Source: Hydrolagus colliei
Taxonomy: Eukaryota
Length of the DNA stretch: 64,000 nucleotides
Reading direction: 5' to 3'
NCBI GenBank assembly: GCA_035084275.1
Contig: CM068756.1
Location: 14,942,001-15,006,000, forward strand
Part shown: positions 87 through 52,178 of the stretch, in pieces
Layout: every line of letters begins with the position of its first letter
How positions within the stretch are numbered: position 1 is the first letter of the stretch
Translations under genes and position numbers: made by a program
The notes under the pieces: model-generated
Database searches by the model: none
What the model saw: only the letters and a program-made list of their open reading frames with translations
What the model was told of the DNA's origin: nothing

Positions 87-203
87 ATCTGGAACAAAAC
101 AGAAAATAATAATCAGGTATATGCCAGTTTGGAGTTTTCTGGCCTGGAGAAAGTAGGAAAACCTAAAAGAAGTGAACCGAATACAATGTATGCTACAGTG
201 CAG
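87..203 (+). CDS. Gene I0 cytoplasmic Tyr-motif exon a (IWNKTENNNQVYASLEFSGLEKVGKPKRSEPNTMYATVQ); 5' part of the gene lies upstream of the window
   Basis: ttttatag acceptor, CAG|gtgag donor, 117 nt, phase 0-0. Carries YASL and the ITSM-type TMYATV. Paralogous to 18063-18179 and 42305-42421. Confidence 0.85.
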
Positions 204-981: not shown

Positions 982-1119
982 ACCAAGCAAGGGGCACATG
1001 GTAATAACCTAACATATGCTGCTCTTGATTTTTCTGAGTCCAAGACAACACAAAAACATAACCGCAGTGACACAAATGTAGTGTATGCCGAGATACAGAT
1101 GAGAAAGAACAGCCGATGA
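982..1119 (+). CDS. Gene I0 ITIM exon b (TKQGAHGNNLTYAALDFSESKTTQKHNRSDTNVVYAEIQMRKNSR*), terminal by read-through
   Basis: ttttacag acceptor; canonical ITIMs LTYAAL and VVYAEI. The donor GT of the paralog (19109) is AT here (1099-1100), so the frame runs to TGA at 1117-1119. Confidence 0.85.
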   Translation, partial: TKQGAHGNNLTYAALDFSESKTTQKHNRSDTNVVYAEIQMRKNSR

Positions 1120-1952: not shown

Positions 1953-2093
1953 GCCAAGCAAGAGGCAGCCGCTAACAAGCTGACATACGCTGCCTTCCAA
2001 TTTTCGGCTTCCAAGAAATCAGGAAAACCTACAGACAGTGACAAGAATACAGAGTACGCGAAAGTACAGGTGAACACCAGAAAGGAGCAATAG
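1953..2093 (+). CDS. Gene I0 terminal Tyr-motif exon c (AKQEAAANKLTYAAFQFSASKKSGKPTDSDKNTEYAKVQVNTRKEQ*), probably orphaned
   Basis: tttacag acceptor; LTYAAF and ITSM TEYAKV; TAG at 2091-2093. Paralog of 20000-20140. Confidence 0.75.
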   Translation, partial: AKQEAAANKLTYAAFQFSASKKSGKPTDSDKNTEYAKVQVNTRKEQ

Positions 2094-8619: not shown

Positions 8620-9375
8620 GATCTAGTTTTCATGTTCGGTTCTGAAGCCAAGGAGGGCACGGGGGATGGGGCAGTGGATTGTCTCCTTAATGGATTTCCA
8701 AACAGGTGGAACGATTGGCTGAAAGCTCTATCAGCTCCCGGGATGGGGCAGATCGATTATTGGGACATGGGATACTTGTATAGTTGTAGAGTGGATGGAG
8801 TAGAAGGACAGTGAGGCCATTTGATCGTGAGGTTAAACATCTCCAGTTGGATTTGCTGGTCCAGGAGAAGGGCTGCACAGAACAGTGGGGTCTCCAGCTT
8901 GTGTATGGAGACGCTGGGAGTCCCCATGAGTTGGGAAGTTGATCGATCAAACCTATATGGAATGACCCCATCAGGGTCCTCGCAGCCCTAGTGAGCTGTA
9001 GGTATTGATTGAGGTGATGTTGGGAAGGTGCCGGAAAGCTAAGGGATTGACAGCCAAGAAGGACATTTGATTTTTGGGTGCCAGTCGTTGTCTGACATAT
9101 GCAGGAACCGATCTCCATGCTCAAACCTATCACACCCGTCCTCACTCGAATTCGTTGGCTTCCCATCACAGAGAGGAACCTGGTTCTCACCTTCCACTTC
9201 AAATGTAATGATTATTTTATTTCATGCTGGACTACAATGCTGGGGTAGTCCAGGAGTTTAATTGAAGTGGGAGCGATGTAAACCGCAATCTTTGCTTCAG
9301 AGATCAGTGTGATATCAAGCCAGCTGAACTTACATTGAAACCACAAAGCCTGTGTATATTTATTACACTATTATT
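8620..9375 (-). mobile_element. Degenerate LINE (L2/CR1) RT fragment; copies near 27570-28320 and 37480-38290
   Basis: ALLLD(LS)-type RT motif remnant; three colinear copies. Confidence 0.55.
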
Positions 9376-11111
9376 ACAAGGCTCTCCCTCTCCCCATCTA
9401 TTTGCTAATGTTCTGTTTTGCTCTGACCATTCCACCTTGCAGTGGGCACTTTGTCTGAGGTGTGGAGCATCACAGAATTATTCATTATAATTATTCTATG
9501 TGGGTTCCTCTCATCGAAAGTGTATGGACGTCACATTGAGATATTGTGTGAGTGAACCACGTGGAGATACCTTTCTTTCACTTCAATAATGAAACTGCAG
9601 AGGGAGGCAACACTACAGAATAGTTTCAGCTGCAAATACATTTCAGTGCGGCATTCATTCTTTCTCTCATCAGTAGGTCAATAGCGATAACAATAATAAT
9701 ACTTCTCGGAGTTGATCACTGGTTTACCAATCTTTGAAACCTGGTGAAAGCGTTTGTCGGGGTTTTATGTACTGTCACTTTACAGTTGGCGAAAACAGAA
9801 GCCAATTTAACGCAGCAATGTACCCACAAACAGACACCAAATACATCACCATTTCTACCAAGAGACTTTCGGCCAAGACACCGGGAGAAAATCACTTCTA
9901 TTTTCCAGCAGCGACGGAGGATATTTTATACCCAGCTGAACTGGCAAACGGGAACCCGGGTAAACATTTCACTCGAAGCAATGCTCCCCCATTAGAGAAT
10001 ATTCCTAAAGTTCTCTTGTCAACGTTTAGCACATAACACTCTGACTGAGCGTCCAGAGGCTGATACAAGCTGCAGGTTAATGCCCATCCTCGCACTTGAC
10101 CTGGTGCCTACAGGAAATGGAAATGTGTTCAAGCGCATTGCTGTTTAGTTAATGACTGTGTCTGTAACAGAGATCAGCAGAGAGAATACACAGTCGATTG
10201 AATAATATCATTCAAAATAATATCTATTACACGGACGTTTAGAATAATTGGCATTGCTCCAAAATCCATAGATTAAAAGTGACGGTTTGTTCTGGCATCA
10301 GCTGAATATAGTGGACTCCGGCACATGTTACATTACAGCTCCTTCAGTCCAGGGCACAGGAGCTGGGATCTCTAACAACAAATTGACACTATGACAATGT
10401 CAGCATCACTTTCTTTACAAATATTTAACGGCGTCACTTCTGGCGGAAATGTGATTGATATTTATCTGTCTGAGAGTCGCACTTTACAATTCATTAGTAT
10501 AATAAAATGAATACAATGCTCATACGGTTAAGCAATGAAATAATATTAATGTGCCTTTAGACAGCGTCCCTCACACGGAGTAGAGGAAATCTCTGCCGCC
10601 CATTTTGGAAAGGAGGGGACGAGAAACAAGCAGGAGGCCAGAGTCAGGCGAGCGGTGGCTGTGGGTGGGGCAGCAGGTCTGGGAGGTGGGGAGGGACGGT
10701 CAGGTCATGCGGGGCTTGTAAACCAGCTTGAGGATCTTGAACACGATCAGTTCTGTGACATGGAGCCAGTGGAGCCTGGCGAGGATTGGTGGGATGGCAA
10801 TACAGAGTTTAAACCTCTCCATTAAACATTGGTTTCAATGATACTATTGAGTTATCCGAACCTGATAAGTCACTGGGTACAGTGTTGGTCACCGCTACAT
10901 GGAGGTTGCTCTAGAGTCAGTCCTGGAGAGAAAAGCAAGGAGAATTATCCAGAGAAGTGTTTGAAGAACAAGCAATCAACAAGGAATTGGTCATCTGGGC
11001 TCCATAGTCTTGAAAATACGACTCATTCGTGTCTCCTAGTGTCTCACTAATATAATAACTTGAATGTACGCCGAAAGTCTGGAAACATGTTATCAAATCA
11101 GAGGGGGAGCC

Positions 11112-11229: not shown

Positions 11230-14200
11230 ATGTTGGCGAGTGTTGTGTTTCAGTGTCTGTCTCTCACAGTGTGGATCATTTCTAAAGGTTTGTGACTATT
11301 CATTAGCCCAGTGATCTCAAACACAAAGTGTGTGTCTCTGTCACAGTATTTTGTTTCAAAACAATGTTTGAATTTATTTCTGACAGTTGCTGACGGTACA
11401 TTGATCACAGTAACACAACAACCCGAACAGATCACTGTCAACAGAGGTGAAAATGTGATATTCTACTGCACCATCTCTAGCACAGCGAACGTGAAACTAT
11501 ACTGGTGGAAACAGGGAGAGAGTGAATACATGGTATTGGATCACAAGAAAACATTTGAAGACGACCTTTCTGGAAGGGCCTTCTTCAGTCTCCAGGATGC
11601 AGGTCCTCAGGACTCTGGGATCTATTACTGTTCAGTGGTATTGAAGGGAAATAAAACAATAAATGGAACCGGATCACATTTAACTGTATGTGGTAAGTGA
11701 CATGATAAGGAAGAGATAGTAACTATTAAAGTTACTCAAACTATAACTTACTACCCATATAAGGCCTCTCACTGTTGATAGAGAATCTTCAAGGGCTTTA
11801 TAAAGCCTGAGGATTAGCCAGAGTTCAGACCCAGCTGGGAGGAGAGAGTGGCCGAAAGGAAGGTTAAAGAGACATGTCATCAGGCGGGGTTCGATAGGAG
11901 AGAAGGAAGATAAGAACGATGAATCCTTGTCCTCACCTTTAAAGTCCTCCATGCCCCATCTCTGCGACCTCCTGACCCCCTTCCAACCCACCCACTCCCT
12001 CTGCTCAGTGGACACTGGCCTGCTCCTTTTGTGCCGACCCACCCCACTATTGGTGGGCAAACCTCCAGCCACTCTGCCCCCAACCTCTAGAATTGCATTC
12101 TGGAATGGCCAAATGTGTCCGCAGTTTTCCAGGACATTGCTGATAATAAGAATAATAAGAATGATCCTTAAATTTGATGTAGAGGGTTTCACGTTTTTAT
12201 TTAGAGGTCTCAAGATGCTTCTCAGAATCTACTATCTTGGGCAAGTTTCCTTGCTCCACACACCTGATAATAATCCCTCCAAAAAAAACCACAATAATAA
12301 AATTGGTCATTTTAATCCACGACTGTGTGTGGGACACTGCTGTGTGCAATTGGCTGCCGCGATTCGCCAACAAATATATACAGTCAATTCACTTTGCAGT
12401 GTATTCTGTGAAGCGCTTTGGGACGTTGATAAGATGTGGAAAACGCTGCATCAAATGCAAGGATTATTATTATTATTATTACTATAAAGTGAATTGACTG
12501 CATATACTCAATGTGGACAAAAATAGCAATATGCAATTGTACAAAGCAGTGTCGCACAATCAGTCAAGAATTGAATTGGCTTTTATTACTGTCTGACAGG
12601 AGATTATTATTTTCTTTTGAGGGATTATTATTAGGTGTGTGGAGTAAGGAAACTTGCCCAAAATTTCCCTGCCTGGAATTGAACCCAGGTCTCTCGCTTC
12701 TAAGGTGAGTGATCCAGTCACTGAGCTACAGGATTCCTGATGACAACACAGTCAGCCTGGTTCAGCGGCAGGACCTGGAAAAGTCGAATAGTGACTGGGG
12801 CGGGGATTCATCCCACTGTTAATCCCACATTTCCAAGCTGTAACGTAGCAGGACAAGCAATGGGAAACTTTGCCAGACAGCAATATCAATGGGAAACTAT
12901 GCGGCTTTAGCTGGTTAGACTCCAGGCCTGTTTGTGATCTCCTTCCAATACTTAAATACAAGTTCTTCATTGTTAAAGTTCATTTTTTGTGTCTTCTGTA
13001 AAATGGAAATTGTGTCGTTTACACCAGAACCCAGTTTATATATAAACCTTTATACGTTAGTGGGAACTGACATGAACAATCACCCTGGTGAGATTTGTTA
13101 TTCACTTGATAGTTATAGAGATATATTTCTGTGCACAAATTGCCTGCCCTTCCTTTACAAATACAGCCAATACTCTTCATAGTATGTCCTGCAAAGCGAT
13201 TTGTGATGTGTTTTTATTTTAGCAAATCTTTTTATTCCAGTGCCACCAATTCCACTGAATATTGCAGCCAAATCTCCTCCAAGAGATTCATCTGTGTTTC
13301 TGACGCTCGTTTGTGAAACGGCCGCGTTTTACCCGGAGAATCTCACCTTCATATGGTCTAAAAACGGCACCGAAATTACAACCGGGATAATCAGCACTGA
13401 ATGGCAGAACCCGGAGGGATTGTATGAAGCTTCCAGCTCAGTGGAGGAGACACAGCCTGTCCGGAATGGGACAGTTTATACCTGTCAGGTGTCTCACCTC
13501 AGCCTCCAGACTCCAGCAATTGGCAACTACACGGTTCAGCTTCCACATCAAGGAAGGAATTTTAGTTTCAGTGGTAATTATCATTAACTGTCTTTCACCC
13601 GAATATTTCCTTCTTTTAATTCACATAAAGAATGATAGCTTTATTTCTCAAACGAATTTGCTTCATGTGAAATATAAATCAATTTTACTTTTTTAATGGA
13701 GAATATTTGAATTATTCTGACTGCAAGATAATATCACTTTCCCTTGAACATATTAACAATTCGGATTTCAAACGTGTAATTTCGTATACCAGTATATTGA
13801 AAGCCAACAACAATACAAACAAAATTACATGTATTGAGCACCTTTCACGTCGGGAAGACGTCCCATGGCGCTGAACAGTCAGGTCGGGACCCGAACAAGT
13901 GAGAGGGGCAGGGTAGGGAAGAGGGTCAGGAAACAATGAGGATGGGAGGGAGAGAGTTGGGAAGGCAGCAGAAGGCACGGGCGAAGAGGAGGTCTTTCGA
14001 CCGGCTTTGAAGGAGGTGAGGGAGGGAGAGAGGCGATGGGACTGTGGGATGGAGTTCCAGAGTGTGGGGGCAGAGAGGCTGATAGTCTATCCACCAATGG
14101 TCTGGTGGGTCAGTCGGAGTATATGGAGCAGACTGGAGAACGCTAAATGGAATGGGTGTGGAAGTACATAGCACGATTACTGGTAGGAGAAGACGGGGGT

Positions 14201-17200
14201 ACCATGCCATGAATGACCTTGAAAGTGAGGATGAGGATGTTGAATTCGATCCTCTGGTGGACAGGAGCTAATGCACCAAGGCGAGGGTGGGAGTGATGTG
14301 TTCATAGAGCTTGGTGCGGGTGAGGACATGAACTGCAAAGTTCTGGATGATCTGCAGCTTGTGAAGGGAAGAACCAGGAAGGCCAATGAGGAGGGAGTTT
14401 CCATATCAAGCCTTGATGTATGGCACGTGAATTTATATTGTATTAGTAAATTGTGACTTCTTAGAATCATAGAATATTACAACACAAAAGGAGGCCATTT
14501 GCCCCATTGAGTCTGTGCTGGCTCTTTGAAACGAGCAATTTAATCCTACTCCCCAGCTCTCTCCCCATAACCGTGCAAACCCATCGTCCCCAAATAAATG
14601 TCCACCTCTCTTTTAAAAGTTGTTATCGAATCGGCTTCCACCACTTTTTCAGGCAATGCATTCCAGATTCAAGCAACTCGCTGAGTGAAAACATTTCTCC
14701 TCACCTCCCCTCTGCTTCTTTTTGAAACTATTTTAAATCTGTGACCACAAGTCACTGATACATCCAACAGTAGAAACCGTTTTTCCCTGTTTACTCTGTC
14801 GAATTCCCTCAAGATCTTAAAAACCTCTATTAGGTCTTCTTGTAACCTTCTCTGCTCCAATGAGAATAAACCTAGCCTCTCTAGCCTTTCCTCATAACTG
14901 AAGTCCCTTCATTACTGGTACCATCCTCGTAAATCTCCTCTGCACCATTTCCAATGCCTTAACATCCTTCCTAAAGTGTGTGACCAGAATTGAACTCAGT
15001 GCTCTAGCTGAGGCCTAACCAAAGTTTTATAGAGTTTAGTCAGAACTTCCTGACTTTTGTATTCTATGCCCCAATTTGTAAAACCTAGTATCCCGTATGC
15101 TTGTTTTTTAACAGTTGCTACATGTCACCACTATTTCATCTCACGATCCGTCTTCAATAGCTTTATGTTAACAAAAATTATAAATTTCAGGAATTGTCAA
15201 TTATTCATTTGTTTGAAGTTCATTGGTTCCCCTGGAGCTGCAGATGAGTCTGGATGATAACGCTGCCCATTCCACAGGGCATTGGAGCACTTTGACCTGT
15301 GCCTGGACTGACAATCTTTTAGTAGATGTCTCTAACTACAGCGATCTCCCGAAAAAATAACTAAGATACCTACCACCGATTCCTCTAACCGATAATAAAT
15401 ATAGGTGTATTCACATAAAATATGAAATTAAAAACAATTTGTAATAGTTTCCTACGAAGCACTTTGAGACATCTGCTTGCTGTAATAAGGTGCTAAACCA
15501 AACACAATAATTATTATTTATTATTATTGCCAAGAGGTTTCATTATCTACAGTTGTCTCTCTACAAAATAATTAATTTACTCTTGCATCTCCTTACTGTT
15601 TAGTAAAAGTAATAGAATACCTTTTAAATGGTCAAACATCACCCAATGGCAAAACAGGAAACAAGTCACATGAACATCATGGTTTCCAACTTTTATGCAT
15701 TGTTCTTAACTGGAAAAATATGATATCCTAACTTTTTCTGACAAATTGTTCAATTATTTAAATTGTAAATCATTAGATCACAATGCGCAGATTTCTCTCT
15801 GCTGGTGTCCAGGCCAACAATGCTCGAAATCAAATTGTTGGCTCACTCTATCATTGAGGAGAAATTGGCTGCCGTTTTCACCCACAAATGCACAATCACA
15901 ACATTTTACAGTACGTCATATGAAGTATTTTGAGACGCTTTGACGACGTGATAAGATTTTACATCAATTATGTCATATAATGGATCATTATATTATAATT
16001 ATGATCTTATCTATAATAGGAAATCAGCTGCTCTATTCATTGCTGATCACTGTATCTGCAGTGGGACTGGCTTTTTTGGTTCTTTTGATGTACATTGGAA
16101 AGCGATCAATGTCAAAGAAAATGAAAGGTAAGAGTCAAATGATTTAGTTCTGGTTGGTGCTTGATTTTAGTACAGTGTAAGTGTGAAAGTACTGTAGCCC
16201 TCCAGACAGAGTTTTTCTGTTCGAAAAGGCTGACCCTTAATTTTAAAACTGTGACCCCTGGTTATAGATTCTCCTACCGGGGAAACAGTCCCTCAGTGCC
16301 TACTTTATCTAGCCCTTTAAGAATCTTATGTGTTTCAATAAGATCGCTCCTAATTCTTCTGTACTGTAGAGAATACAGCCCTACATTCAGTTTTTTTCAA
16401 CACTGAAGATTCAATACAAATTTCAGTTATTATATTTCATTCCTTTTAGGGGTACAGAGGAATCAGAATGATTTGAGCCAGCATAGCCAGCAGGTAATAT
16501 GCACACCTATATGTTATTTATAATGATATGAGGATGTTTTCAACATATTTCTTACATGATTGTCCATTTCACTTTGTCATTCAAATTGTGTTCACACCAA
16601 TATGAGGCACCAAAGCAATGCAAGCAACATAAAATACAAGTGAAAAGTTAAGTGTTGCAGTTTGTGATAATAATAATAATAATCTTTGCATTTGATATAG
16701 CGCTTTGCACATCTAATCGACATCTCAAAGCACTTCACAGAATATATGGTAACGTGAATTCATTGTATATTTGTGAGCAAAATGTGGCAGCCAATTTGCA
16801 CAACAGTGTCCCACAAACAGTCGTGGATAGAAATGAACCATTTGTATTATTGTATGTGTTTTGGGACAGATTATTAATAGGTGTAAGAAAATATAGGCAA
16901 TGCAAGCAGGAGATGATGAAATGGTGACTTATATCTCATTGAATTTGAAAACTTCCAATAAACTTTCAACACCTAAATATTAGATACAATAGTTTACACA
17001 TGAAAAACACAACATAATAGTGCATCTGAATAACTTAAAATTGATACATACAATAATATGATTCTGACTGTAATAAATAGAGTGATGCTCATGTGTTCTG
17101 TTGAGAGAACATCACTTCAGGGAGGATGTTGAAAACTTCAATGAAGATTTCCAAGAATAATTTGAGCAGACAGGACAAGTCTGTTTACATTGGAGCAAAG

Positions 17201-20140
17201 AAGGTTGAGATGATTTGATGAAGGTGTACAAAATTGGGAATGATTTTGTTAGGGTGTGAAGAAAGAAGCTATACCCATTATTAAGGGGGTCAGCAAATAG
17301 AGGACATGTATAAAATATGTCATCTGTATAAGAGCGCCTTTCATGTCTGGAGGATGTGATTGTCTAAAGAAGAGTGAAAGGAAACTTTACCAGATTTTTT
17401 CATGCAAGTAGTTGTTTTGGTAAGGTGCTCGAAGCAGAGTCTATGGGAGTTTCAAGAGGGAAGTCGATCGGGACATAAAATATATGCTTTACCGGTCCTC
17501 TAATCTGATAAACAAAAAACAAAAATTATCGACTGAAATGAACAGTTAGATCAGGACCCTGCTGAATTGAGGGAACGGGCAAGCTGATAGGGAGACAGCA
17601 GATCGGAGAGATAGGCGAGGGCAAGGCCGTGAATGTCCTTGAAAGTGAGGATAAGGATCTTAAATTCAAGAGGACAGCGACGAGATATTCCAACTGCTGT
17701 TTTTTATGCATGAACCTAAACGGTAAGAGCAGCAGACTAGACTCCTCGCTAGACATGACAACTGAATGGAATCTGTCTCACGCATCGATTTCCTGTAGAC
17801 AATTGTTGAATCGATCACTACCTGAGAGTTGCCCACTCCCATTCCAGAGAAGGAACTTTTAAATCATTTCCTATGCTTTCTAGACGACCCTAGGAGGCAG
17901 CTGGGTACATGTGGTTTCTTTATTGATGGGTTTGAGCACATGTCTTTACAATTGAGCTGCAGGAGGAACCATGCTGAAGATTTCAATGGATTTCTTTTAA
18001 CTGTGCTTCAATTTCAACATAAAGACTCAAATAATTAATCTCCAATTTCTTGGCTTTTATAGATCAGGCACACGACAGAAGATAATAATCAGGTATATGC
18101 TACTTTGGAGTTTTCAGGCCTGGAGAAAGTAGGAAAACCTAAAAGAAGCGAAGCGAATACAATGTATGCTACAGTGCAGGTGAGAAACTGGAAAGTTATT
18201 GGAGGCCATTTAAAGGGAACCAGAATCAATTAAATTGATGTTTGTTGTTACCTGTGAGATGATTATTAGCACAAAGTAAATGGAGGTTCCCTACGATATA
18301 AAACAATGTGTAAAGTAGTCCCGTGGATGATATCCAACCACCCAACCCCTGCACCTACTCACACAAACATAGTAATGGATATGGAGTTCAATAACAAGTG
18401 TCTCTGTATCAATCATGCATTGAACCAGGTCCTTTTCTAATGCTTATGGCACTGATCATTTGGCATTATCAATTGAGATATGGGAAAAACCAAGGTGGGA
18501 AGTCATATCGGTATTTTCACTGATGTTTCTGTTTTTTTTGCATTGAGATTGAACCAACTAAATTACTAACACAATAATTGTCTCTTTTCAATTCAAGATT
18601 CTGGTCCTCACCATTGTAGCCCTCCATGGGCTTGCCCCACCCTATATCTGTGACCTCTTCTCCCCCTACCAATCTGTCCACTTCTTCCACTCAGTGGACT
18701 CCAACCTGCTCCATCTCCCCCGATCCCTCTGTCCCACAACCCCCCACAACCTCTGGAATTTCATCCTGCAATCTCTCCATCTTGCCCATTTCCTCGTCTG
18801 CTTCAATTCCTGCCTCAAATCCCTCCTTTTTGATGGTGCCATTCATCAGCCCCAATACTCCCTTCCCTTCCCTCCACTCCCAAATCCTGACCCCAGCTGG
18901 GGTCTGATATGCTAAATGTCCAGTACCTTGGGATGTCCTCCCAATGTGAAAGGCGCTATGGAAATGTAATTTTGTTTTTATTGTTTTACAGACCAAGCAA
19001 GGGGCACATGGTAACAACCTAACATATGCTGCTGTTGATTTTTCTGACTCCAAGAGAACACAAAAACATAACCGCAGTGACACAAATGTAGTGTATGCCG
19101 AGATACAGGTGAGAAAGAACAGCAGAGACTTTTTAAGAATATATTGGTTATACTCTCTGTCATATCAACTGTATGCATTAACACCAATGCTGTCCTGCTA
19201 AGTGTATCACCATTATTCCCAGATGAAACTGAAGATCAACAATTATAGAATCGTGCCAGAGGGAAATAGACCATTCCTCCCAATACAAGAACATTAGATT
19301 AAGGACCAGGAGTAGGCCATTCGGCCTATTGAACCAAACCCACCATTCAATAAGATCATGGCTGATCTTCTAATATAACTCCACCAGCCCATTTTATCCC
19401 CATATCCCCATATCCTTCAATCCCTTTATCCAAATTAAATCTATCAATTTCATTCTTCAATATGTTCAAGGACTGAGTATCTACAACCTTTTGGAGTAAC
19501 AAATTCCACAAATTCACGACCCTCTAAGTGAAGAAGTTTTTCCTCATCTTTGTGCAAAAAGGCTGACCCCTAATCTAAGACTGTGACCCCCTAGTTATAG
19601 TTTCTCCAACCAAGGGAAATAGTCTCCCACTGTCTATTCTGCAAGCTGCACTAATGTGTTTTCCACATCTATTATCCCAATCTAAAATTTCCATTGGCTC
19701 TTCAATCCATTCAGTTTTTACCACTTTAAGAATCTGTCCTTTTCTTTGTTTGCAGAAAATTTGACCTTGTTGCCCATCCTTTACGTTATAGAATTTGTGA
19801 TGATCTTAAATATGTGCCCTCCAATAACTGACAAGCTGTATTTTGCTACATACATCCAAGTAAATCTAGTTCTCCTGCTTGCTTCCCAACCACATGCCTT
19901 GACATTTACCGCGAACTATAACTAGGAAAATATCAGTAGTTTATCAAAGTTGGACAAAGCGATAAGATAATAATTTTTTTTCAAACATTGAGTTTACAGG
20001 CCGAGCAAGAGGCAGCCGCTAACAAGCTGACATACGCTGCTTTTGAATTTTCGGCCTCGAAGAAAACAGTAAAACCTAAAGACAGTGACAAGAATACAGA
20101 GTATGCGAAAGTACAGGTGAACAACAGAAAGGAGCAATAG
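11230..20140 (+). CDS. Gene I1: inhibitory VJ-C1-TM Ig-superfamily receptor (SIRP-like), about 407 aa
   Basis: join(11230..11287,11387..11692,13241..13573,16020..16127,16450..16493,18063..18179,18992..19108,20000..20140) = 1224 nt, open frame, GT-AG introns with matching phases (1,1,1,1,0,0,0). Leader MLASVVFQCLSLTVWIISK; V with C-W-YYC and NGTGSHLTV; C1 with LVC/FYP/W/YTCQVSH; uncharged TM LLYSLLITVSAVGLAFLVLLMYI; six Tyr motifs. The model needs the downstream C1 donor at 13574. Confidence 0.85.
11387..11692 (+). CDS. I1 VJ-type Ig V exon
   Basis: ORF 11311..11700; TVTQQP, FYC, YWWKQ, DSGIYYC, NGTGSHLTV; ttctgacag acceptor and G|gtaagt donor. Confidence 0.95.
12195..12735. mobile_element. 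Two SINE copies in the V-C1 intron (plus about 12195-12487, minus about 12560-12735); paralogs about 31145-31695
   Basis: Same family body and (TTA)n tail. Confidence 0.8.
13241..13573 (+). CDS. I1 Ig C1-set exon
   Basis: ORF 13240..13587; LTLVCETAAFYPENLTFIWSKNG...YEASS...YTCQVSH. The 5' boundary is firm; the 3' boundary is inferred because the usual donor reads GA. Confidence 0.9.
13810..14430 (-). mobile_element. L2 3' fragment in the C1-TM intron (orthologous copy about 32980-33595)
   Basis: (AAC)n tail and RT C-terminal remnant. Confidence 0.75.
14460..15130 (-). mobile_element. CR1 LINE 3' fragment
   Basis: ORF 14669..14860 RRLQEDLIEVFKIL...GHRFKI...RRNVFTQRV, typical CR1 ORF2 end; ATTCT-type tail. 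Confidence 0.8.
16020..16127 (+). CDS. I1 transmembrane exon, uncharged TM followed by a basic stop-transfer segment
   Basis: (G)NQLLYSLLITVSAVGLAFLVLLMYIGKRSMSKKMK; 108 nt, phase 1-1, aatag acceptor and G|gtaag donor. Confidence 0.9.
16667..16885 (-). mobile_element. SINE inserted at the acceptor of I1 exon 0
   Basis: (TAA)n tail then family body; absent at the paralogous site 41140-41154. Confidence 0.8.
16897..16983 (+). pseudogene. Disabled ITIM exon 0 of I1 (AMQAGDDEMVTYISLNLKTSNKLSTPKY*)
   Basis: Homologous to the intact exon 41155-41265; in-frame TAG where the paralog has CAG; a SINE sits immediately upstream in the acceptor region. Confidence 0.7.
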
Positions 20141-21058
20141 AATCTATCACAACTGAACAGGATACACACAATGTTACAATAATAGGTGAGGATGCTCATT
20201 AGAGTGCAGTAAACCCATAATAATAAGACTAATCATGATTACCTATAAATTTGATATAGCGCTGTACATGTCTTCTAGACATCTCAAAGTGCTTCACATA
20301 AAATAATGTAAAGTAAATTGACTTTCTATTTGTTGGCAAAACACAGCACCCAATTGCACACAGTAGTGCCACAAACAGTCGTGGATTAAAGTGACCACAT
20401 TATTATTGAATTTGTTTTGCGTGGCATTATTATTAGATGTGCGGATAAAGGAAATTTACGCAAGGTTTCACCCTGCCTGAAATCGAACTGAGGTCTCTCA
20501 CTTGTAAGTCGAGCGCTCCAACCACCCTAGACAAGACTCTAATCTCTCTCTCGTTCTCTCTGTCACTCTCTCTATCTGTCTCTTGATTTCTCTCAGTCTT
20601 TCTCTCTTTCTCCCTCAGACTCTCTCTCAGTCTCTCGCTCCCTCTTGTGTGAAGCTATTTGAGACATCTAGAAGACATGAAAAGGACTATATCAAATGCA
20701 AATTAGTAGTAAAAACAATGTTAATCATTCCATGCAATGTGGAGTAATGCCCAAGTTGTAAATTGATTCCATATGTTAAACACAACTATAGTTATTTGTG
20801 ATCTTTAAATATTTTATGTGGTTCCTTTGAGAAAAGTTGCCTGGTTACATTTATTTCCAGTTTTACGTGCTGATCAGTGATGACTTATATTTATCTGATA
20901 ATATCTTTGGACCCAACTCGTGAATTCTTTAATTAAGAAATAATTATGTATACCACAAGCCTCACAAACATAAACTGTATTCAATTTAAACGGTTTACTG
21001 TATTGTGTATAATCAGCTTTTTCAAAGTCATACCATATCATGTTTTAAGAAATTTTCC

Positions 21059-36109: not shown

Positions 36110-38601
36110 CTCACACACTGAACGTATTATATTTGCAGATTAATCAATATGGAAGTGTCTTGGCAAACTATTAAGCGTTTCCCTCATCCAGACAACCTGT
36201 ACACGCTAAGAAGCAGCTTTAGGATTCTCACTCGATGTTGAGCGGTTAGTGTGTCTGCACAGGGCTGGGCTCAGCGCACAATCGGAGTCGGGTGAAACTC
36301 ACTGAGAGTTGTCCAACCCGAGGTTGTGACAGGCTCCAATAAAACAGGAAATTATCAATGCAGTTGGCGACACGTGTACACTGTGTGGTCAGGTATATAC
36401 CGTGTGAGAAACCACGGCTTCCAATCCAGCAACAGTCACGCAATGTCACAACAGAACCAGCCAGAGGCCGAGTGAGGGTCGCCGCCACTGTGGGTTTCTC
36501 ACTCCAGAAAAACAAACTCAGCGACAATACAGCAGCGAGAGCCGAGACACAGGTGGGAGACAACACCCGCAGAGAACACAGGCTTGTACAGCAGCTACAG
36601 ACCAGGTTACTGTAGTAACTCACAGCAGGAAACAGTGACACAGACCAACCTGCCCGGCAGTCCCGCCTTGTAAACTTTATTAAAATGTTTCCCACAAAAC
36701 TGCGGGTACTTGTGGCTTTCGTTGCTTGAGGATGTTTCTCCTCGACGTTTTACTGGATATTATTCCCGATTGGCGCAAATCTTTACACACCAGCAACAAA
36801 TATACATTCCGATTATTAAAAGTGACATTGTGTTTTGTGAACATTTTAATAGCGGAGACCAGTGACGATATATCGGGGTTTGCAGCGGTTGTCAATATGA
36901 GCTCCACCTCCTGATGAGTTAAGCACAACCACAGTCACATTCTCGGCCTGTCTCAGTCCAGGGTGAGTATCGCTCGGCATCTGTATCGATCATGAATGCT
37001 GTCCCGCGGTGCTGTGGTTCACTCTCTAGAGACAGACTGACATAACCCCCCAGGAGTGATCTCAGTAAATATCTGTTTAATTGATGGGGGAGCGGACAGG
37101 GCGTCAATACAGTGGAGAGGAATTCTTGTACAAAATATGATAAACTGTGATGAGGAAAGCGGTTGAACCGGGAGCAGGGAGATAAGGTTTGATTGCTTAA
37201 CTTTGATTATTTACTCAACAAAGATTCACAACCGACAGAAAAAAACATTGATCCGGAAACATTTATGGTTCACAGTTCCGCAGCCCCACGTACACAGTAT
37301 TCTGTGAAATCATTAACACTTCTATAGCATATTGTACAAGGTCCAGCTGTGACAAAACAACAACAATAATGTACCTTCACATGTAGCGACTGTCACCTGA
37401 AGAGAGGATCCCAAACCACCTGGTGCTGAGACGCGGGGGGAGAACATGGGGGAGGACAGCTTTACTGTTCGGTTCTGAAGTCAACAACAACATCAACAAC
37501 AAGGTCAGGTGTGGGAAACGGGGGAGGGATTCTCTTTAATAGAGTTCCAAACTGGGGAACCGAGTTTGTGAGAGATCAGGTCCAGGGATGGGGCAGATCA
37601 GTCATTGGGACATGGGATACTTGTGTAGTTGCTGAGCGGATGGAGTACAAGGAGGACAGTGAGGCCATTTTAATCGTGAGATAAACATTCGCAATTGGAT
37701 TTGCTGGGGATTGGAAGCCAGTGAAACCAAACCAGGATGGAGGTGAAGGAGAAGTCCAGGAGAAGGGCTTTAGTCCAGGAGAAGGGCTGCACGGAGCAGG
37801 AGGGTCTGCAGCTTGTGTATGGAGACGCTGGGAGAGCCCGTGAGTTGGGAAGTTGATTGATCAAACCTGGATGGAAAGACTCCATCAGTGTCTCCCCAGC
37901 CATGGAGAGCGGTGGCCACTGATTCAGGTGATGTTGGGAATGTGCCGGAAAGCGATTGACAGCCAAGAAGGACGGCTGTTTTGCGGGGTCAGTCGTTGCC
38001 TGGCGGTTTGTGGGATCCCATCTCCATGCTCAAACCCATCACACCCATCCTCGCCCGAACTCACCGGCTTCCCATCACACAGAGGGTCCCAGTTCTCACC
38101 CTCAACTACAAATGTAATGGTTATTGTATTTCATGCTGGGCAAAGCAACACCGCAATACTAGGGAAGTCCACGAGTTTAATCCAAACGAGTTTGTTCACC
38201 GCAATCTTTGCTTCAGAGATGAGTGTGATATCAAGCCAGCTGAACTTACATTGAAACCACAAAGCCTGTGTATATTTATTACACTGTTATCACACAGCCT
38301 GTCCAGAATGGGACGGTTTATACCTGTCAGGTGCCTCACCTCAGCCTCCAGACTCCAGCAATTGGCAACTACACGGTTCAGTTTCCTCCTCAAGGTAGGA
38401 ATCCAAACGTGTCGGTGTTAACTGTTTCTCACAAGAACATTTCCTTCTTTCGATTTTCACCGCGAAAGTCAGCCATGTAACTTGCTTCATGTAAAATATA
38501 AATCGCTTTCATATTTTAATGGAGAACATTTGAATTGTTGTGAACGCATAATATCACCTACCCTTGAAATGTTAACACTTCGGGTTTCAAACGTTAGACA
38601 T

Positions 38602-39396: not shown

Positions 39397-42300
39397 ACAT
39401 CTAATACATTCTTTCCAAGAACGCGAGTATGAAAGTGAATTTCCATCCCTCAACCTCTTAATTACGAGTTAACATTATGTCCCCCTCTATTTCATCTCAC
39501 GACCCATCTTCAGCACCGCTTTATTAAACAATTTTAAAATGATTTGCTCTCAGGCATTTTACAAAGATGCTTTCATTCAAAACCCAGTCCCACGATTTCT
39601 CTGGAGCCGCAGCTGAGACTGGAAGATGATCCTGTGGATGATGATCTCCAGGATATGTTGTTTCACCCCATAATAGCTCAGCATATTTTCATCCGATCTT
39701 AATTTGGCTGCATTTGGCAATTTTTTATACATGCCTCCATCTGCAGCTGTATCCCCATAAAACAACTAAGATAGCTGCCGCAGATCTACTTTTCTGATAA
39801 TAAATACATTCACCCACAAAATATAGAGTCATAAAAACACTTGGCAACACAGTTTCCTGCGAGGCGCTTTGAGACGTCTGCCTGGTGTAATAAACCGCTA
39901 TGTCAAATGCAAGGATTCTTATTTATTATTATTGTTGTCGAGAGGTTTCGTTGTCCGACATGAAAGGGGCTATACAAATGTAATTCTGTTGTTGTTGTTG
40001 TCTACAGTTGCCTCTCTGTTAAATAATAAACTTTCTCTCTCCCTTACTATTCAGTAGGAAAAAAATCAAATACCTTATTTTAAACGGGTCAAACACAACC
40101 TGATAGAGAAGCAGGAAACAAGTTCCATGAAACATCTCGGTTTCCATTTGTTTTATATATTGTTCTTCAATTTTTTTTAAAATGATCCTAATTTGTGCTG
40201 AAACACATTATTCTTTCTGATGAATTGTGTAATTATTGAAACAGTAAACCACTGGATCACTAGTGTCTAATTCCATTTCTCATCTCACAGTTTCCAAGCC
40301 AACCATCCCACAAATCAAATTGTTGGGTTTACTCTAAGATCACTGTGCCAAAATTGGATGCCGCGATCGCCCCCGAAATACACAATCACAACATTTTACA
40401 CTGCATCATGTGAAGCGTTACGAGAGGCTTTGACCATGCGATAACATTAGCTGGAGTGCTCTGAGACGCCGTCCGGCCTGGAGGGCGCTATATAAATCGA
40501 AGTTGTTGTTGTTGTTGTTATATCAAATACACACTTCATCATATCATTCCTATGATGTCGGCTACAGTAAGAAATAATGAGCTTCCTGAAACATTACCCA
40601 TCACCGGGTCTGCAGTGGGGGGTGCTTTTCTTGGTGCTGTTGGTGTACATGCGAACGCGCTTTCAGTTAAAGAAAATGAAAGGTAAGGTTCAAATTATTT
40701 TGTTTCGGTTAATGGTGAAAGCTTGATTTTAGTACATGTAAGTGTGAAAGTGCTATATCTCTCTGGCAATGCACAGATACAGATTTTCATAGAAAAATAG
40801 AAACTCTGGATGTCCAATTGTTTTTACTCTTATCATTCTTCACTGGAGATTCAGTAAAATTTCAGTTATATTTCTTTCATTTTAGGGGTGCTCAGGAAAC
40901 AGAATGATTGTGACCACTGTACCCAGCAGGTAATATACATCCCAGGCAGTGTTTACTACCCAAAGGGTGATTGATAACATTGAAAAAGATTTTGTTGTTT
41001 ATAACTGGATGAGAATGCTTTTACAATATTTCTTACCTGACTGACAGTTTCACTGTGTCACTCAAAATATGTTCACACCAATATGAGTCATCTGGTCTTG
41101 AGAAAAGACCATATATTTGGGTAAAAGTTGAAAGTTGCAGTTTGTGATTTTCAGGTACTGCCAGGAGGAGATGCTGAGATGGTGATTTATATGACACTGG
41201 ATCTGAAAAGTTCCAATAATCGTTCAAGACCCAAACATCAGGAAGATAGCACAGTTTATGCCAAGGTACATTTGAAAAACATAACATCGACATTTACAAT
41301 CACGCTATTCTAACCGTAAGAGATAGATTGAAGCTCATGTGTTCTGTATTGGACACCTCACTTCAGGAAAGATGTTAGAACATACAGAGAAGAATTGTGA
41401 AATATGGTTTATAGAAACCGTATACAGAAATAAATTATTCCCATTGTTCAGGGAGTCAGCAAGTAGAGGACAAGTATAAGGTGGTCACATGGAGTGAAAG
41501 AAATGTATCTTTTTAAACACAAGGAGTTGTTTTGGTACAATATGAGATGCAGAGTCTGTTGCAAGTTTCAAGAGAGAAGTAGAAAGGTACATGAAAAATA
41601 TGCTTCACCGGGCCTCTACTCTGTTTATACAACCTCGACAAGTTATCCCAAATATTGTTTATTTGTGAGTGGGCCTTGACAGTGAATCCAGAAGGAAGTA
41701 GATAGGTACTTGAAAAATATGCTAACCCTAAACCTAGTCCAATTATTCAGGAACACCATAACTTATTCCCCCACCAAAGAAAATTATGTGCGAGCCTAGA
41801 TAGTTAGTGCATTAATCTAGGCTGCTTGATAGACATCAGAGCTGAATGGAAACTGTCTCACGCATCTCTTTCCAAAAGACAATTGGCGAATCGCACACTA
41901 TCCGAGAGTCTCTCCTGCTTCCCAGACAAGTACGTTGAGGCCATTTGCTGCATCCATGGACAACTCTGGGAGGGAGGTGGGTACCTCTGGGTTCTTATGG
42001 ATGGGTTTGGAACTGAACAATTGTCTTTGCAATTCAGCTGCTGCAGGAGAAGCAATTGAGTATTATTTTTTACCAAAAGACTGAATTAATCATTCGATAA
42101 CAACGTTTAAAAGCAAGGTAGACATTTATTTGGGGAGGACGGGTTTGCGAGGTTATGGGGAGAGAGCTGGGGAGTGGGATAAAATTGTTGTTTTTAAAGA
42201 GCCAGCACAGACTCGATGGGCTGAATGGCCTCCTTTTGTACCATAAGATTCTATGATTCTAAGATTCTATGATAATTAAATTCCAATTACTTGATTTTTT

Positions 42301-43140
42301 ATAGATCAACCAAAACACAGAAGACAATAAGCAGGTAAATGCTGCTTTGGAGTTTTCTGGCCTGGAGAAAGTAGGAAAACCTAAGAGAAGTGATCCAAAT
42401 ACAGTGTATGCCTTGGTGCAGGTGAGAAATCATGAAGGACATTGGAGCCCATTTACAGGGAATCAAAATCAATGATGTGTTGTATTAATTGGTGCAAGAG
42501 CTTATTATTAGATCAAAGGGATGGTAGTTTCCCTACTATACAAAATAATGTGTAAAGTAATGCCATGTTACTTGTCTATCACTGAGCCCAGTGCAGCTAA
42601 ACATCACTGTCAAGTGCATACCTACATTCATTGGCACTGCTTTCCAATTTGAAAACTACCAATGGCCACCAGAATGATTTCCATCTCCCCTCTCCCTGTG
42701 TGCACATACTCACATCAATAGATATAATTTATAAACCAATACTTAGTATAATGGTTGTATTCTCTGTGATAGAGATTGAGTTCTCCCACACCAAATGTTG
42801 TGCTGCTAGTGCACAACCATTATTTCCAGAGGACACTGCAGTTTAACAATCATAGAATCCTGCCAGAGAAGGGAAATAGGCCATTCTTTCCAAACCAAGC
42901 TGCACTCATGTCTTTTCCACACTAGTTAACCCAATCTAAAATTTCCATTGGCTCCTCAATCCATTGAGCTCTTCCTTCATTACAAATTGGTCATTTTCAA
43001 ACCACGACTGTTTGTGGGACACTGCTGTGTGCAATTGGCTGCCGCATTTCACCCACAGATACACAGTAATTCACTTTACAGTATATTCTGTGAAGAGCTT
43101 TGAAACATCGATAAGATGTGAAAAGAGCTATATCAAACAT

Positions 43141-43465: not shown

Positions 43466-43899
43466 GTTTTACAGGCCAAGCAAGGGGCAGCTGCTGACAA
43501 ACTGACATGCTGTTTTAGAATTTTCTGCCTCCAAGACAACAAGAAAACCTAAACACAGTGACAAGAATACAGAGTATGCCGAGATACAGGTGAAAAAAAA
43601 CCAGAGTAGCAATAGAAGCCATCACAAACCATGGAACAGGATCCAAATAATCTTACAGTGATAGGTGCAGAAGCTGATTAGAGTTCGGTACAATGTTAGC
43701 CATTTCAATGTGGAAAGTAATCCTGGTTAAATTTATTTCCGGATTAAATACTCATCAGTGATGTTTTGTATGTATCTGATCATGTTGTTAGACCTAACTG
43801 ATGAATTTTTAATTCAGAAATAGTCAATTATACTGCAATAAAGAAACATGTACCATGTTTTGTGAACTTTTCCATAAAGACCAATTCCAAATCATAAAA

Positions 43900-47463: not shown

Positions 47464-48116
47464 CTATCCCGATACATCAAAAAATACTCTACAAAGTGTT
47501 GGACAGGAACCCGACCACCTCTCTGACTCTAGTTTGTGAAACGGATGAGTTTTACCCAGAAGATATCACTATCACTTGCTATAAAGATGATAAGAACATT
47601 TTGGCTGTGAATACAATCAAACAGCTTGGGAGAGGTGGGAGAGATATAAAGCTTCAAGCTCCGTGGAAGAGACAAAGCCTATCCACAGAGGGACTGTTTA
47701 CACCTGTCTGGTATCTCACCTGAGCCTTGGGACTCTAATCATTGCTATGTACGTTGTTTCTGGTTCTTACCAAGGAAAACTTGTGTTTTTCTTCTAAATC
47801 TTGTTGCTGATGATGTGTTTTCATTGTTGTTATGCACTCCAACACCTCCACCTTGCCCACAATATTAACTGAACAGAATTAACCATCATATCAAGTTCCT
47901 GAGCTATTGAACGCCATGTGCGCTGTGCCATTATCAGTCCTCCAAGAGAAGGATGTTTTATTTCTTGGCAAACACTATATTTGTTATATATTGTTGTATT
48001 TATTTTGCAGCTGCTGATCAGGGGATACAGAGGGCTATGTTAACACTGTGTTTATTGTTGATGCTGTTGTTGACAGTTATCATTGTGGACTAGCATAAAA
48101 CCAACACTATTTGAAG
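47464..48116 (+). pseudogene. Gene A4: activating-type relic (frameshifted C1 exon plus Arg-TM exon)
   Basis: C1 about 47464-47774: LTLVCETDEFYPEDITITCYK...frameshift...YKASSSVEETKPIHRGTVYTCLVSHLSL. TM exon 48011-48116: (A)ADQGIQRAMLTLCLLLMLLLTVIIVD*HKTNTI* then AG|gtaag. No leader or V exon found. Confidence 0.8.
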
Positions 48117-50400: not shown

Positions 50401-51889
50401 TAAACAGAAATCGCTGGGAAGTTTCACACTCAGCGGGTCAGGCAGCATTTATGGAGAAAGGAAACGTGAGTCAACATTTCTGGTCCACAACCCTTCGTCA
50501 GAACTGCAGAACTAGTCATTTACTTCAGCGCTGTTTGACCTGCGCTGTGTGAAGGGCACTGTACTGTATAAATGCAGGTTGTTGTTGTTTATGAAACGCT
50601 GCTGAGGGCAAATTGTCGTTATGTTTGCCTACAATTAAACAGTCACCTTTTTTCACCTCACACTGAAACACGGAAATGAAACACCGAGTAATGCTTTGAG
50701 ATATCTGAATGAGTTGCTACATAAAAATGCAAGATTATTAAACGTTGCCGAGTTGAACATTTCAAAAGCCAGATCATTACATCTACAAAGTCAGGTTCTA
50801 GTTTACTCATTGTATGACTAGTCTTCCTGGAAAATTACACATCTATTTATTCTGACCAGGGTAAGATAAGTAATAGTGAAACATTGCATTCAAATGTCTC
50901 TACAATTTGATCTGAATGATTTACTGTGAGTCAAAGTGTCTTTCCAACCTGGAAATAGCTAAGCAGTTTTTTTAAATGAAAAACTCAAATTTAACCGATT
51001 TGATCAGCCACCAAGGGTTCACTTTAAGTGGTCAACAATATCGGATAAAGGCAGCCCACAGTAAACATTCCATTACACTCAGTACAACACCGCACTCATT
51101 CTAAGAAAACCGTTCGTGCATTTAAAAAGAAACAGTTGTGGTTTCCTGTTTGTTGATGGACAGCTTCTTGAAACTGGTCAAGTCACATAGTTGTGCATTT
51201 CTGTCCACAGTGTATTTTTTGGCAATGTAGAATTTAATAAAGGTGTGTGCTACAAGCACAGAGCTCCACCATTATGAAGCGCTCTGAGACGCCGCCCAGG
51301 GTGGAGGGCGATATATAAATGCAATTGATCACTGTTGTTTTTGTACCTTTAAATCCACTGCTGGCCTACAAATGGCCTACAAGGCAGCAGCTGCGGTTAG
51401 GCTGAGTACACGCAGGCTGAGTACACGCATGCAGAGTAGATTACCATCTTTGAAGTGCTGATGATTTGCCGAAACTTTGACCCAAAGAGCAGCGTGGAAT
51501 GGGATGAAGGAAGAGTGCAATATGAGATTGATCAGTTATAACTGATACTACAAGTTTGAGAGATAAAAAATATTTTCATATTCCAATTGAGGGTAAAGAA
51601 TAGTTGTGAAGTTAGCTGATCTTTCCTCTGCTGTGATAAGATCAGGTGTGGATCAGAGGCCGCTCTAAGGCTGTAAAAACAAATCGCACCCCAGAAACCA
51701 CATCTTTTTGCAACGTTTAAAATTGCAGTGAGTATACGCTCTCACTGCACTCCCACCACAAGCCCTGGCAGGGGCTAGTGCGATCGCCCCCGCTGTGACT
51801 TGGGATTGGGCCAGGGTCTCGCCTGGTTTAAAGATGAGCAAATAAAAGGCGCCAGATGTGAAAGTGGTAACAAAGTGAAGGATTCATAA

Positions 51890-52178
51890 TAATCCTTGCA
51901 TTTGATATAGCGCTTTTCACGCCTTCTACACGTCTCAAAGCATATCCCAAAATAAAATGCAAAGTGAATTGACTGTATATTTGTGGGCAAAACGCAGCAG
52001 TGAATTGCACACAACAGTTTCCCAGAAAGAGTTGTGGATTGAAATAACCAATTTTTTTTTAGGGATTATTATCAGGGGTGTGGAGTAAGGAAACTTGCCT
52101 AAAGTTTCACCCTGACAGGAATTAAACTCAGGTCTCTCGCTTGCGAGGAGAGTGCTGTAACCACTGAGCTACAAGATT
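51890..52178 (-). mobile_element. SINE
   Basis: Family tail, body and head. Confidence 0.8.

Follow-up and report, generated by a model that had tools for sequence, protein, structure and literature searches.

The window analysed here is a stretch of 64,000 nucleotides from the genome of the holocephalan Hydrolagus colliei (GenBank assembly GCA_035084275.1, contig CM068756.1, positions 14,942,001 to 15,006,000 of the forward strand; all positions below are counted from its first letter), and it contains a tandem array whose copies recur about every 18–19 kb. Very probably, the region 18063–20140 comprises the final three coding exons of I1, a gene of this array that is intact and would encode a SIRP-alpha-like inhibitory receptor, and the differences found between the copies of the array (I0, I1 and I3) are the result of decay. 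These three exons, named a, b and c, each specify one pair of tyrosine motifs in the predicted cytoplasmic tail of the receptor; a fourth related exon, called exon 0, precedes them.

Tail exons and gene structure of I1

Exons a, b and c are all 117 nucleotides (39 codons) long, lie in phase 0 and have CAG (Gln) as their last codon. Their frame-1 translations are IRHTTEDNNQVYATLEFSGLEKVGKPKRSEANTMYATVQ for exon a, TKQGAHGNNLTYAAVDFSDSKRTQKHNRSDTNVVYAEIQ for exon b and AEQEAAANKLTYAAFEFSASKKTVKPKDSDKNTEYAKVQ for exon c (20000–20116); in the latter the frame extends past the CAG for seven further codons (VNNRKEQ) and ends at a TAG at 20138–20140. Every one of the three carries a tyrosine at codon 12 and another at codon 35, i.e. 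23 residues apart inside a unit and 16 residues apart across unit borders, so that the predicted I1 tail displays six tyrosines with successive gaps of 23, 16, 23, 16 and 23 residues. The acceptors of a, b and c (..tttatag, ..ttttacag and ..gtttacag) all end in AG and are rich in pyrimidines. Exons a and b share the donor CAG|gtgaga, whereas the CAG of exon c is followed by gtgaac, a weaker or poor donor. Because the exons are symmetric (117 nucleotides, phase 0 at both ends), any subset of them preserves the reading frame.

Pairwise nucleotide identity among the three exons amounts to 74–75% (blastn E values from 1e-9 to 1e-16) and, judged by this likeness, they are clearly paralogues of one another. 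The intron between a and b and that between b and c could not be aligned, and their comparison revealed no detectable similarity. As regards the exons, the preliminary description, made from the letters of the window, holds: it had proposed 117-nucleotide phase-0 exons with tyrosines at codons 12 and 35, and positions, frames and motifs agree in each case. Well supported, too, is its proposal of an inhibitory-type tail built from duplicated symmetric exons, in which a motif resembling a tyrosine-based inhibitory motif of immunoreceptors (ITIM) is followed 23 residues later by a second ITIM or by a tyrosine-based switch motif of immunoreceptors (ITSM).

Upstream of the tail, I1 displays in order a leader, a V-set, a C1-set and a transmembrane exon, followed by a mini exon of 44 nucleotides and the tail exons (see the table). 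The V exon ends in GTGSHLTV, which fits the J-like pattern G-x-G-x-x-L-x-V and is joined in the germline, as in SIRP. Also as in that family, the transmembrane segment is uncharged and is combined in I1 with paired ITIM/ITSM tyrosines (six, in three pairs). Between 13573 and 16020 no second C1 exon was found. The I1 copy of exon 0 is preceded by a purine-rich acceptor tract, contains an in-frame TAG at codon 29 and lacks both the second motif and the donor, in agreement with the earlier view that it is disabled; with exon 0 dead, the predicted tail of I1 therefore combines the mini exon with exons a, b and c.

Table. Features of gene I1 and of the array copies I0 and I3 (positions within the window)
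Feature	Position	Strand	Remarks
I1 leader exon	11230..11287	+	MLASVVFQCLSLTVWIISK; donor aaag|gtttgt, phase 1; read directly
I1 V-set exon	11387..11692	+	J-like GTGSHLTV, germline; Pfam V-set E 9.9e-11
I1 C1-set exon	13241..13573	+	Pfam C1-set E 1.3e-11; PDB matches UrIg2, SIRP-gamma, SIRP-alpha
I1 transmembrane exon	16020..16127	+	LLYSLLITVSAVGLAFLVLLMYI; uncharged; phase 1 to 1
I1 mini exon	16450..16493	+	44 nt; GVQRNQNDLSQHSQQ; phase 1 to phase 0; same size in Callorhinchus milii locus L001
I1 exon 0, dead copy	16897..16982	+	VTYISL retained; in-frame TAG at codon 29; lacks donor and second motif
I1 exon a	18063..18179	+	117 nt; phase 0-0; QVYATL and TMYATV
I1 exon b	18992..19108	+	117 nt; phase 0-0; LTYAAV and VVYAEI
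I1 exon c, terminal unit	20000..20140	+	LTYAAF and TEYAKV, then VNNRKEQ and TAG stop
I0 exon a	87..203	+	open frame, both tyrosines kept
I0 exon b	982..1098	+	donor AT instead of GT at 1099–1100
I0 exon c	1953..2093	+	intact; unit 1953–2069, then VNTRKEQ and stop
I3 transmembrane exon remnant	40592..40683 (approximate bounds)	+	frameshifted relative to I1
I3 exon 0	41155..41265	+	111 nt; VIYMTL and TVYAK
I3 exon a	42305..42421	+	first Tyr replaced by Asn (QVNAAL)
I3 exon c	43475..43589	+	115 nt; 2-nt deletion in first Tyr codon, frameshift, stop after 25 codons

Related units in other cartilaginous fish

A profile built from eight units (alignment A2) and run against a set of 1.84 billion representative proteins retrieved 23 matches, all but two of them from cartilaginous fish (21, from Callorhinchus, Heterodontus, Heptranchias, two species of Scyliorhinus, Mustelus and Pristis); the other two were a teleost protein and a weak match to an unrelated repeat protein. 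About half of the cartilaginous-fish matches bear the NCBI name 'tyrosine-protein phosphatase non-receptor type substrate 1-like'. None of the matches in the protein collections was a protein of H. colliei itself. The proteins of the related species are already present in databases as unstudied predictions, and what is described here is not a new kind of system. A literature search did not find descriptions of SIRP-type receptors in sharks or cartilaginous fish, and a paper on the organisation of the major histocompatibility complex did not contain these genes.

The closest comparison is with Callorhinchus milii, whose proteins show amino-acid identities of 60–80% to the window; two of them (P0001 and P0003) contain units recognisable as 0, a, b and c. 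In a tree of the units, clades a (support 100/100) and b (100/97) each unite H. colliei with C. milii. The c units of the two species also group together (92/68) and are nested with clade a (89/86), while the 0 units join at 86/88 inside a group of shark 'first units' (85/81); the 'second/terminal unit' group is where a, b and c are placed. Since C. milii possesses orthologues of 0, a, b and c and yet the window is only 60–80% identical to its proteins, the four unit types predate the split of the two lineages. Units a and b very probably go back to old duplications of the terminal-type unit c that preceded the split from Callorhinchus.

How an internal exon could arise from a terminal one is illustrated by the annotated C. 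milii gene XP_007902824.2 (locus L001), in which a transmembrane exon ending in phase 1 is followed by a 44-nucleotide mini exon, a unit 0 of 102 nucleotides, an internal unit of 117 nucleotides lying between cacag| and CAG|gtgagt, and a terminal unit in which the frame continues beyond the closing Gln-Val (CAA GTG). Here the likeness of the internal and terminal units extends past the donor (VSNHGGVVE, intronic, against VGANRAAVE in the terminal exon), and alignment of the units in the window likewise shows some exon similarity carrying on beyond the CAG. For this reason we infer that the internal units derive from duplicates of a terminal exon: in such a duplicate, the Val codon GTG next to the closing CAG would come to supply the GT of a splice donor. 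The exon design itself is, as far as the predicted gene structures indicate, family-wide in cartilaginous fish.

Counting the units in the relatives, a check that the preliminary description had proposed, gave two in most of them, with three or four in the others. Three units are found in C. milii P0005, S. torazame P0012 and Heterodontus P0018, and Heptranchias P0013 has a partial third. Four units (eight tyrosines) are predicted in Heterodontus francisci XP_067906071-74 (P0049, P0043, P0048, P0002) as an exact repeat of a two-unit block, which may be an assembly artefact; isoform X4 of this gene skips the C1 domain.

Two of the matching proteins have an unusual composition. The C. milii Gnomon model P0001 (XP_007904055.1) opens with the b and c units of an upstream gene, followed by the V, C1 and transmembrane regions and units 0, a and c of the next one, and looks like a fusion of two neighbouring genes. 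The teleost match, P0011 of Scortum barcoo, is a receptor with multiple Ig domains and three similar units (NLHYASVEFSN...NVEYAAVKV), pointing either to a wider distribution or to convergence of repeated bis-tyrosine units.

Decay and unit number in the array

The unit sets of the array copies differ, and the preliminary description had inferred that symmetric exons allow the strength of inhibition to be tuned by cassette duplication, loss or skipping. Examination of the copies speaks for another origin of the differences. I0 had been described as having a and b with c cut off: a and b are indeed present, but exon c is intact as well and is followed by a stop. It is the donor of exon b that is damaged. 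Reading through it would add MRKNSR and then a stop, so that truncation before c is one possible outcome and no more; with splice-site mutations in general, skipping of the affected exon (here leaving a+c) is at least as likely as read-through.

For I3, the set 0, a and c without b had been correctly recognised, including exon 0 as a fourth related exon of 111 nucleotides with VIYMTL and TVYAK. The first residue (I) of the following exon completes TVYAK to an ITSM. The copy, however, has decayed. Apart from the Asn for Tyr in exon a and the frameshifts listed in the table, its leader, its V exon and most of its C1 exon are deleted. The junction lies at about 38292–38304 (within 38009–38402), where sequence resembling 9104–9387, a stretch that precedes the V exon of I1 by some 2 kb, runs directly into the middle of C1; what remains is the last third of the C1 exon, homologous to 13450–13560. 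I3 is a 5'-truncated, frameshifted pseudogene and we have rejected it as evidence for tuning.

As I3 is a pseudogene, I0 has a dead donor and I1 a dead exon 0, the per-gene differences in the window are lesions, and they are best read as decay in a birth-and-death gene family, not as demonstrated regulation. The idea that they show tuning is, in the form first proposed, not borne out in the window. On the evolutionary scale, tuning by duplication, loss or skipping is plausible, given that the number of units varies from 2 to 4.

A stronger version, in which the number of cassettes is adaptively adjusted by duplication, loss or regulated skipping so as to grade inhibition across paralogues and isoforms, has several observations on its side, namely the symmetric phase-0 exons that keep the frame in any subset, the variation in unit number (2, 3 or 4) across genes and species, and the recurrence of the combination 0+a+c in the C. 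milii model P0001. There is also a precedent for ITIM content controlled by splicing in CEACAM1, where inclusion of cytoplasmic exon 7 decides between a long and a short tail (PMC2490704, PMC4113144), although skipping of that exon shifts the frame to give the short tail, whereas skipping in I1, if any, would drop one module in frame. Set against this are the lesions that account for the variants of the window, and the predicted isoforms of Heptranchias and Heterodontus, which in the sets compared differ by their N-terminus or by C1-exon skipping and never in the tail. We consider such an adaptive adjustment doubtful, and hold decay to be the better account of the array. About equally tentative is the related idea of a true copy-number module, by which the exon count (2 to 4) would set how many SHP phosphatases a receptor holds and would evolve fast, mammals having frozen two units in one exon.

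Some further elements of the window were noted. A diverged C1-set exon at 47469–47758 aligns in two pieces with its I1 counterpart, at 44–62% amino-acid identity; neither a V exon nor a tail cassette was detected near it, and it may be another member of the family or a remnant. An interspersed repeat of about 300 nucleotides resembling a short interspersed nuclear element (2161–2490, 20215–20545, 51886–52182, 59595–59925 and others) stands directly downstream of exon c in both I0 and I1 and is also present, in either orientation, in many introns. An assembly gap (a run of N) is found at 57596–57727.

Motifs, constraint and relationship to known receptors

Within each unit an ITIM-like motif comes first and the second motif is either an ITSM (in a, c and 0) or an ITIM (in b). 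Four of the six I1 motifs are canonical: both motifs of b (LTYAAV and VVYAEI) fit the ITIM consensus [S/I/V/L]xYxx[I/V/L], and the second motifs of a (TMYATV) and c (TEYAKV) fit the ITSM consensus TxYxx[V/I]. Every tyrosine of a, b and c is followed by Ala at position pY+1, a residue that in ITIMs favours SHP1 (PMC8631942). In PD-1 and BTLA the ITIM and ITSM tyrosines are 25 residues apart, with similar values in numerous other ITIM/ITSM receptors, and such spacing may permit 1:1 bivalent parallel binding by the tandem SH2 domains of SHP1 or SHP2 (PMC8631942). The 23 residues of the I1 units fit this value, as the preliminary description had suggested in proposing tandem SH2 docking. Weak similarity (E 0.038) was also found between the unit profile and a bis-ITIM peptide of 33 residues from PZR/MPZL1 (PDB 9mq5_B); the two tyrosines align apart from a one-residue gap.

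From motifs and spacing, each unit would most likely dock one SHP-1 or SHP-2 molecule. The units would be phosphorylated by a Src-family kinase, and each phosphorylated unit would then engage the tandem SH2 domains of one phosphatase in the bivalent parallel mode. If each unit docks one SHP, I1 offers three docking sites; the three units may thus provide for up to three phosphatases per receptor, or for greater avidity and redundancy. It is conceivable that the tail acts instead as a switch or scaffold, its ITSM and YAxx motifs recruiting SAP/EAT-2-type adaptors, Csk or SHIP, given that three of the motifs are of ITSM type (TMYATV and TEYAKV in I1, TVYAK in I3 exon 0), that two first-position motifs are not canonical ITIMs and that the ITSMs of SLAM receptors bind SAP-family adaptors (PMC3958483). 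Yet the order ITIM then ITSM, the 23-residue spacing and the Ala at pY+1 all match receptors that recruit SHP (PMC8631942), and we regard a role other than plain SHP docking as unlikely.

Conservation bears on whether all three units are in use. Between I0 and I1 the exons are 91.5–96.6% identical and free of insertions or deletions, against 82–91% identity and about 100 gap columns in the introns. Over a+b+c, 15 non-synonymous against 10 synonymous changes give a ratio of non-synonymous to synonymous rates (dN/dS) of 0.38 (p = 0.024, one-sided binomial), a modest signal based on only 25 substitutions. Taken with the matches of the unit profile, the C. milii orthologues and the divergence of the introns next to about 75% identity among the exons, this argues that a, b and c are all functional exons. 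That the mature I1 mRNA would use only some of them (a alone or a+c), the rest being relics of old duplications, is improbable: exon 0 of I1 is indeed a unit dead in place, the pyrimidine tract of the c acceptor is weaker and ATTAAA signals are present in the a-b and b-c introns (where a scan for poly(A) signals was uninformative), but in both I0 and I1 the exons a, b and c retain an open frame, their two tyrosines and good splice sites, their C. milii orthologues have persisted through a long separation in which the intervening introns lost all similarity, and the combinations 0-a-b, b-c and 0-a-c are joined in gene models of C. milii.

The reading of I1 as an intact SIRP-alpha-like inhibitory receptor gene also has points against it, which we gather here. 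The gene model and its splicing are predictions from the genome sequence, all the relatives compared are likewise genome-based predictions, and the selection signal between I0 and I1 is, as said, modest. Two of the first-position motifs are non-canonical, QVYATL by its Q at -2 (which unit a of C. milii also has) and LTYAAF by its F at +3. The exon design is not common to the mammalian gene, since mouse Sirpa has its ITIMs together in a single exon, exon 8 (PMC9071265). Finally, the unit profile had no tetrapod SIRP-alpha tail among its matches at E <= 0.001, and homology of the tail to that of mammalian SIRP-alpha therefore rests on the motifs and the ectodomain.

Even so, by domain layout, motifs and the automatic naming of its relatives, the closest named family appears to be SIRP. 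I1 shares with SIRP-alpha (also SHPS-1 or PTPNS1) the V-set domain with a J-like motif, the C1-set domain, the uncharged transmembrane segment and the paired tyrosine motifs of the tail, and its relatives have been named SIRP-alpha-like by NCBI. It differs from mammalian SIRP-alpha, which has the arrangement V-C1-C1 with two C1 exons, in having a single C1 exon, and it distributes its motifs as one pair per symmetric phase-0 exon instead of placing all of them in one exon as mouse Sirpa does. Three pairs (six tyrosines) stand against the two pairs of the mammalian protein; the expectation that six motifs would exceed the number in SIRPA is borne out by the four tail tyrosines reported for mouse SIRP-alpha (PMC9071265), although six is not the maximum of the family, a horn-shark (Heterodontus) relative being predicted to have eight. 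The cartilaginous-fish proteins called SIRP-alpha-like (C. milii XP_007902824, XP_007902894 and XP_007904055; Heterodontus XP_067906071) belong to the same family as I1 and have the same tail units and exon layout, but their unit sets differ, most having two units and Heterodontus four through an exact block duplication.

Other receptors resemble I1 in part. PZR/MPZL1, PD-1, BTLA and PECAM-1 have an ITIM-type tyrosine and an ITSM- or ITIM-type tyrosine about 22–25 residues apart (PMC8631942), but in a single pair and with unrelated ectodomains, whereas the I1 pair is a repeated exon module. In the PDB, the I1 C1 exon matched shark UrIg2 best (9dmx_A, E 6.6e-17), followed by SIRP-gamma (3e-13) and SIRP-alpha (1e-11). 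An identity with UrIg or UrIg2 was rejected, as UrIg2 consists of a VJ domain and many C1 domains and the paper describing it mentions neither ITIM nor SIRP; the match may bear on how the C1 domains of SIRP-like and UrIg proteins are related.

This comparison shows a putative paired-tyrosine docking unit of SIRP-type receptors to have been present already in the common ancestor of sharks and chimaeras. In cartilaginous fish the unit acts as a separate exon module, repeatedly copied and lost, and the internal units would offer a concrete case of a terminal exon turning into an internal cassette. The receptors with two, three and four units form a natural series that could be used to test how the number of ITIM/ITSM pairs affects phosphatase stoichiometry and inhibitory strength, an effect that is hard to separate from other variables in the receptors of mammals.

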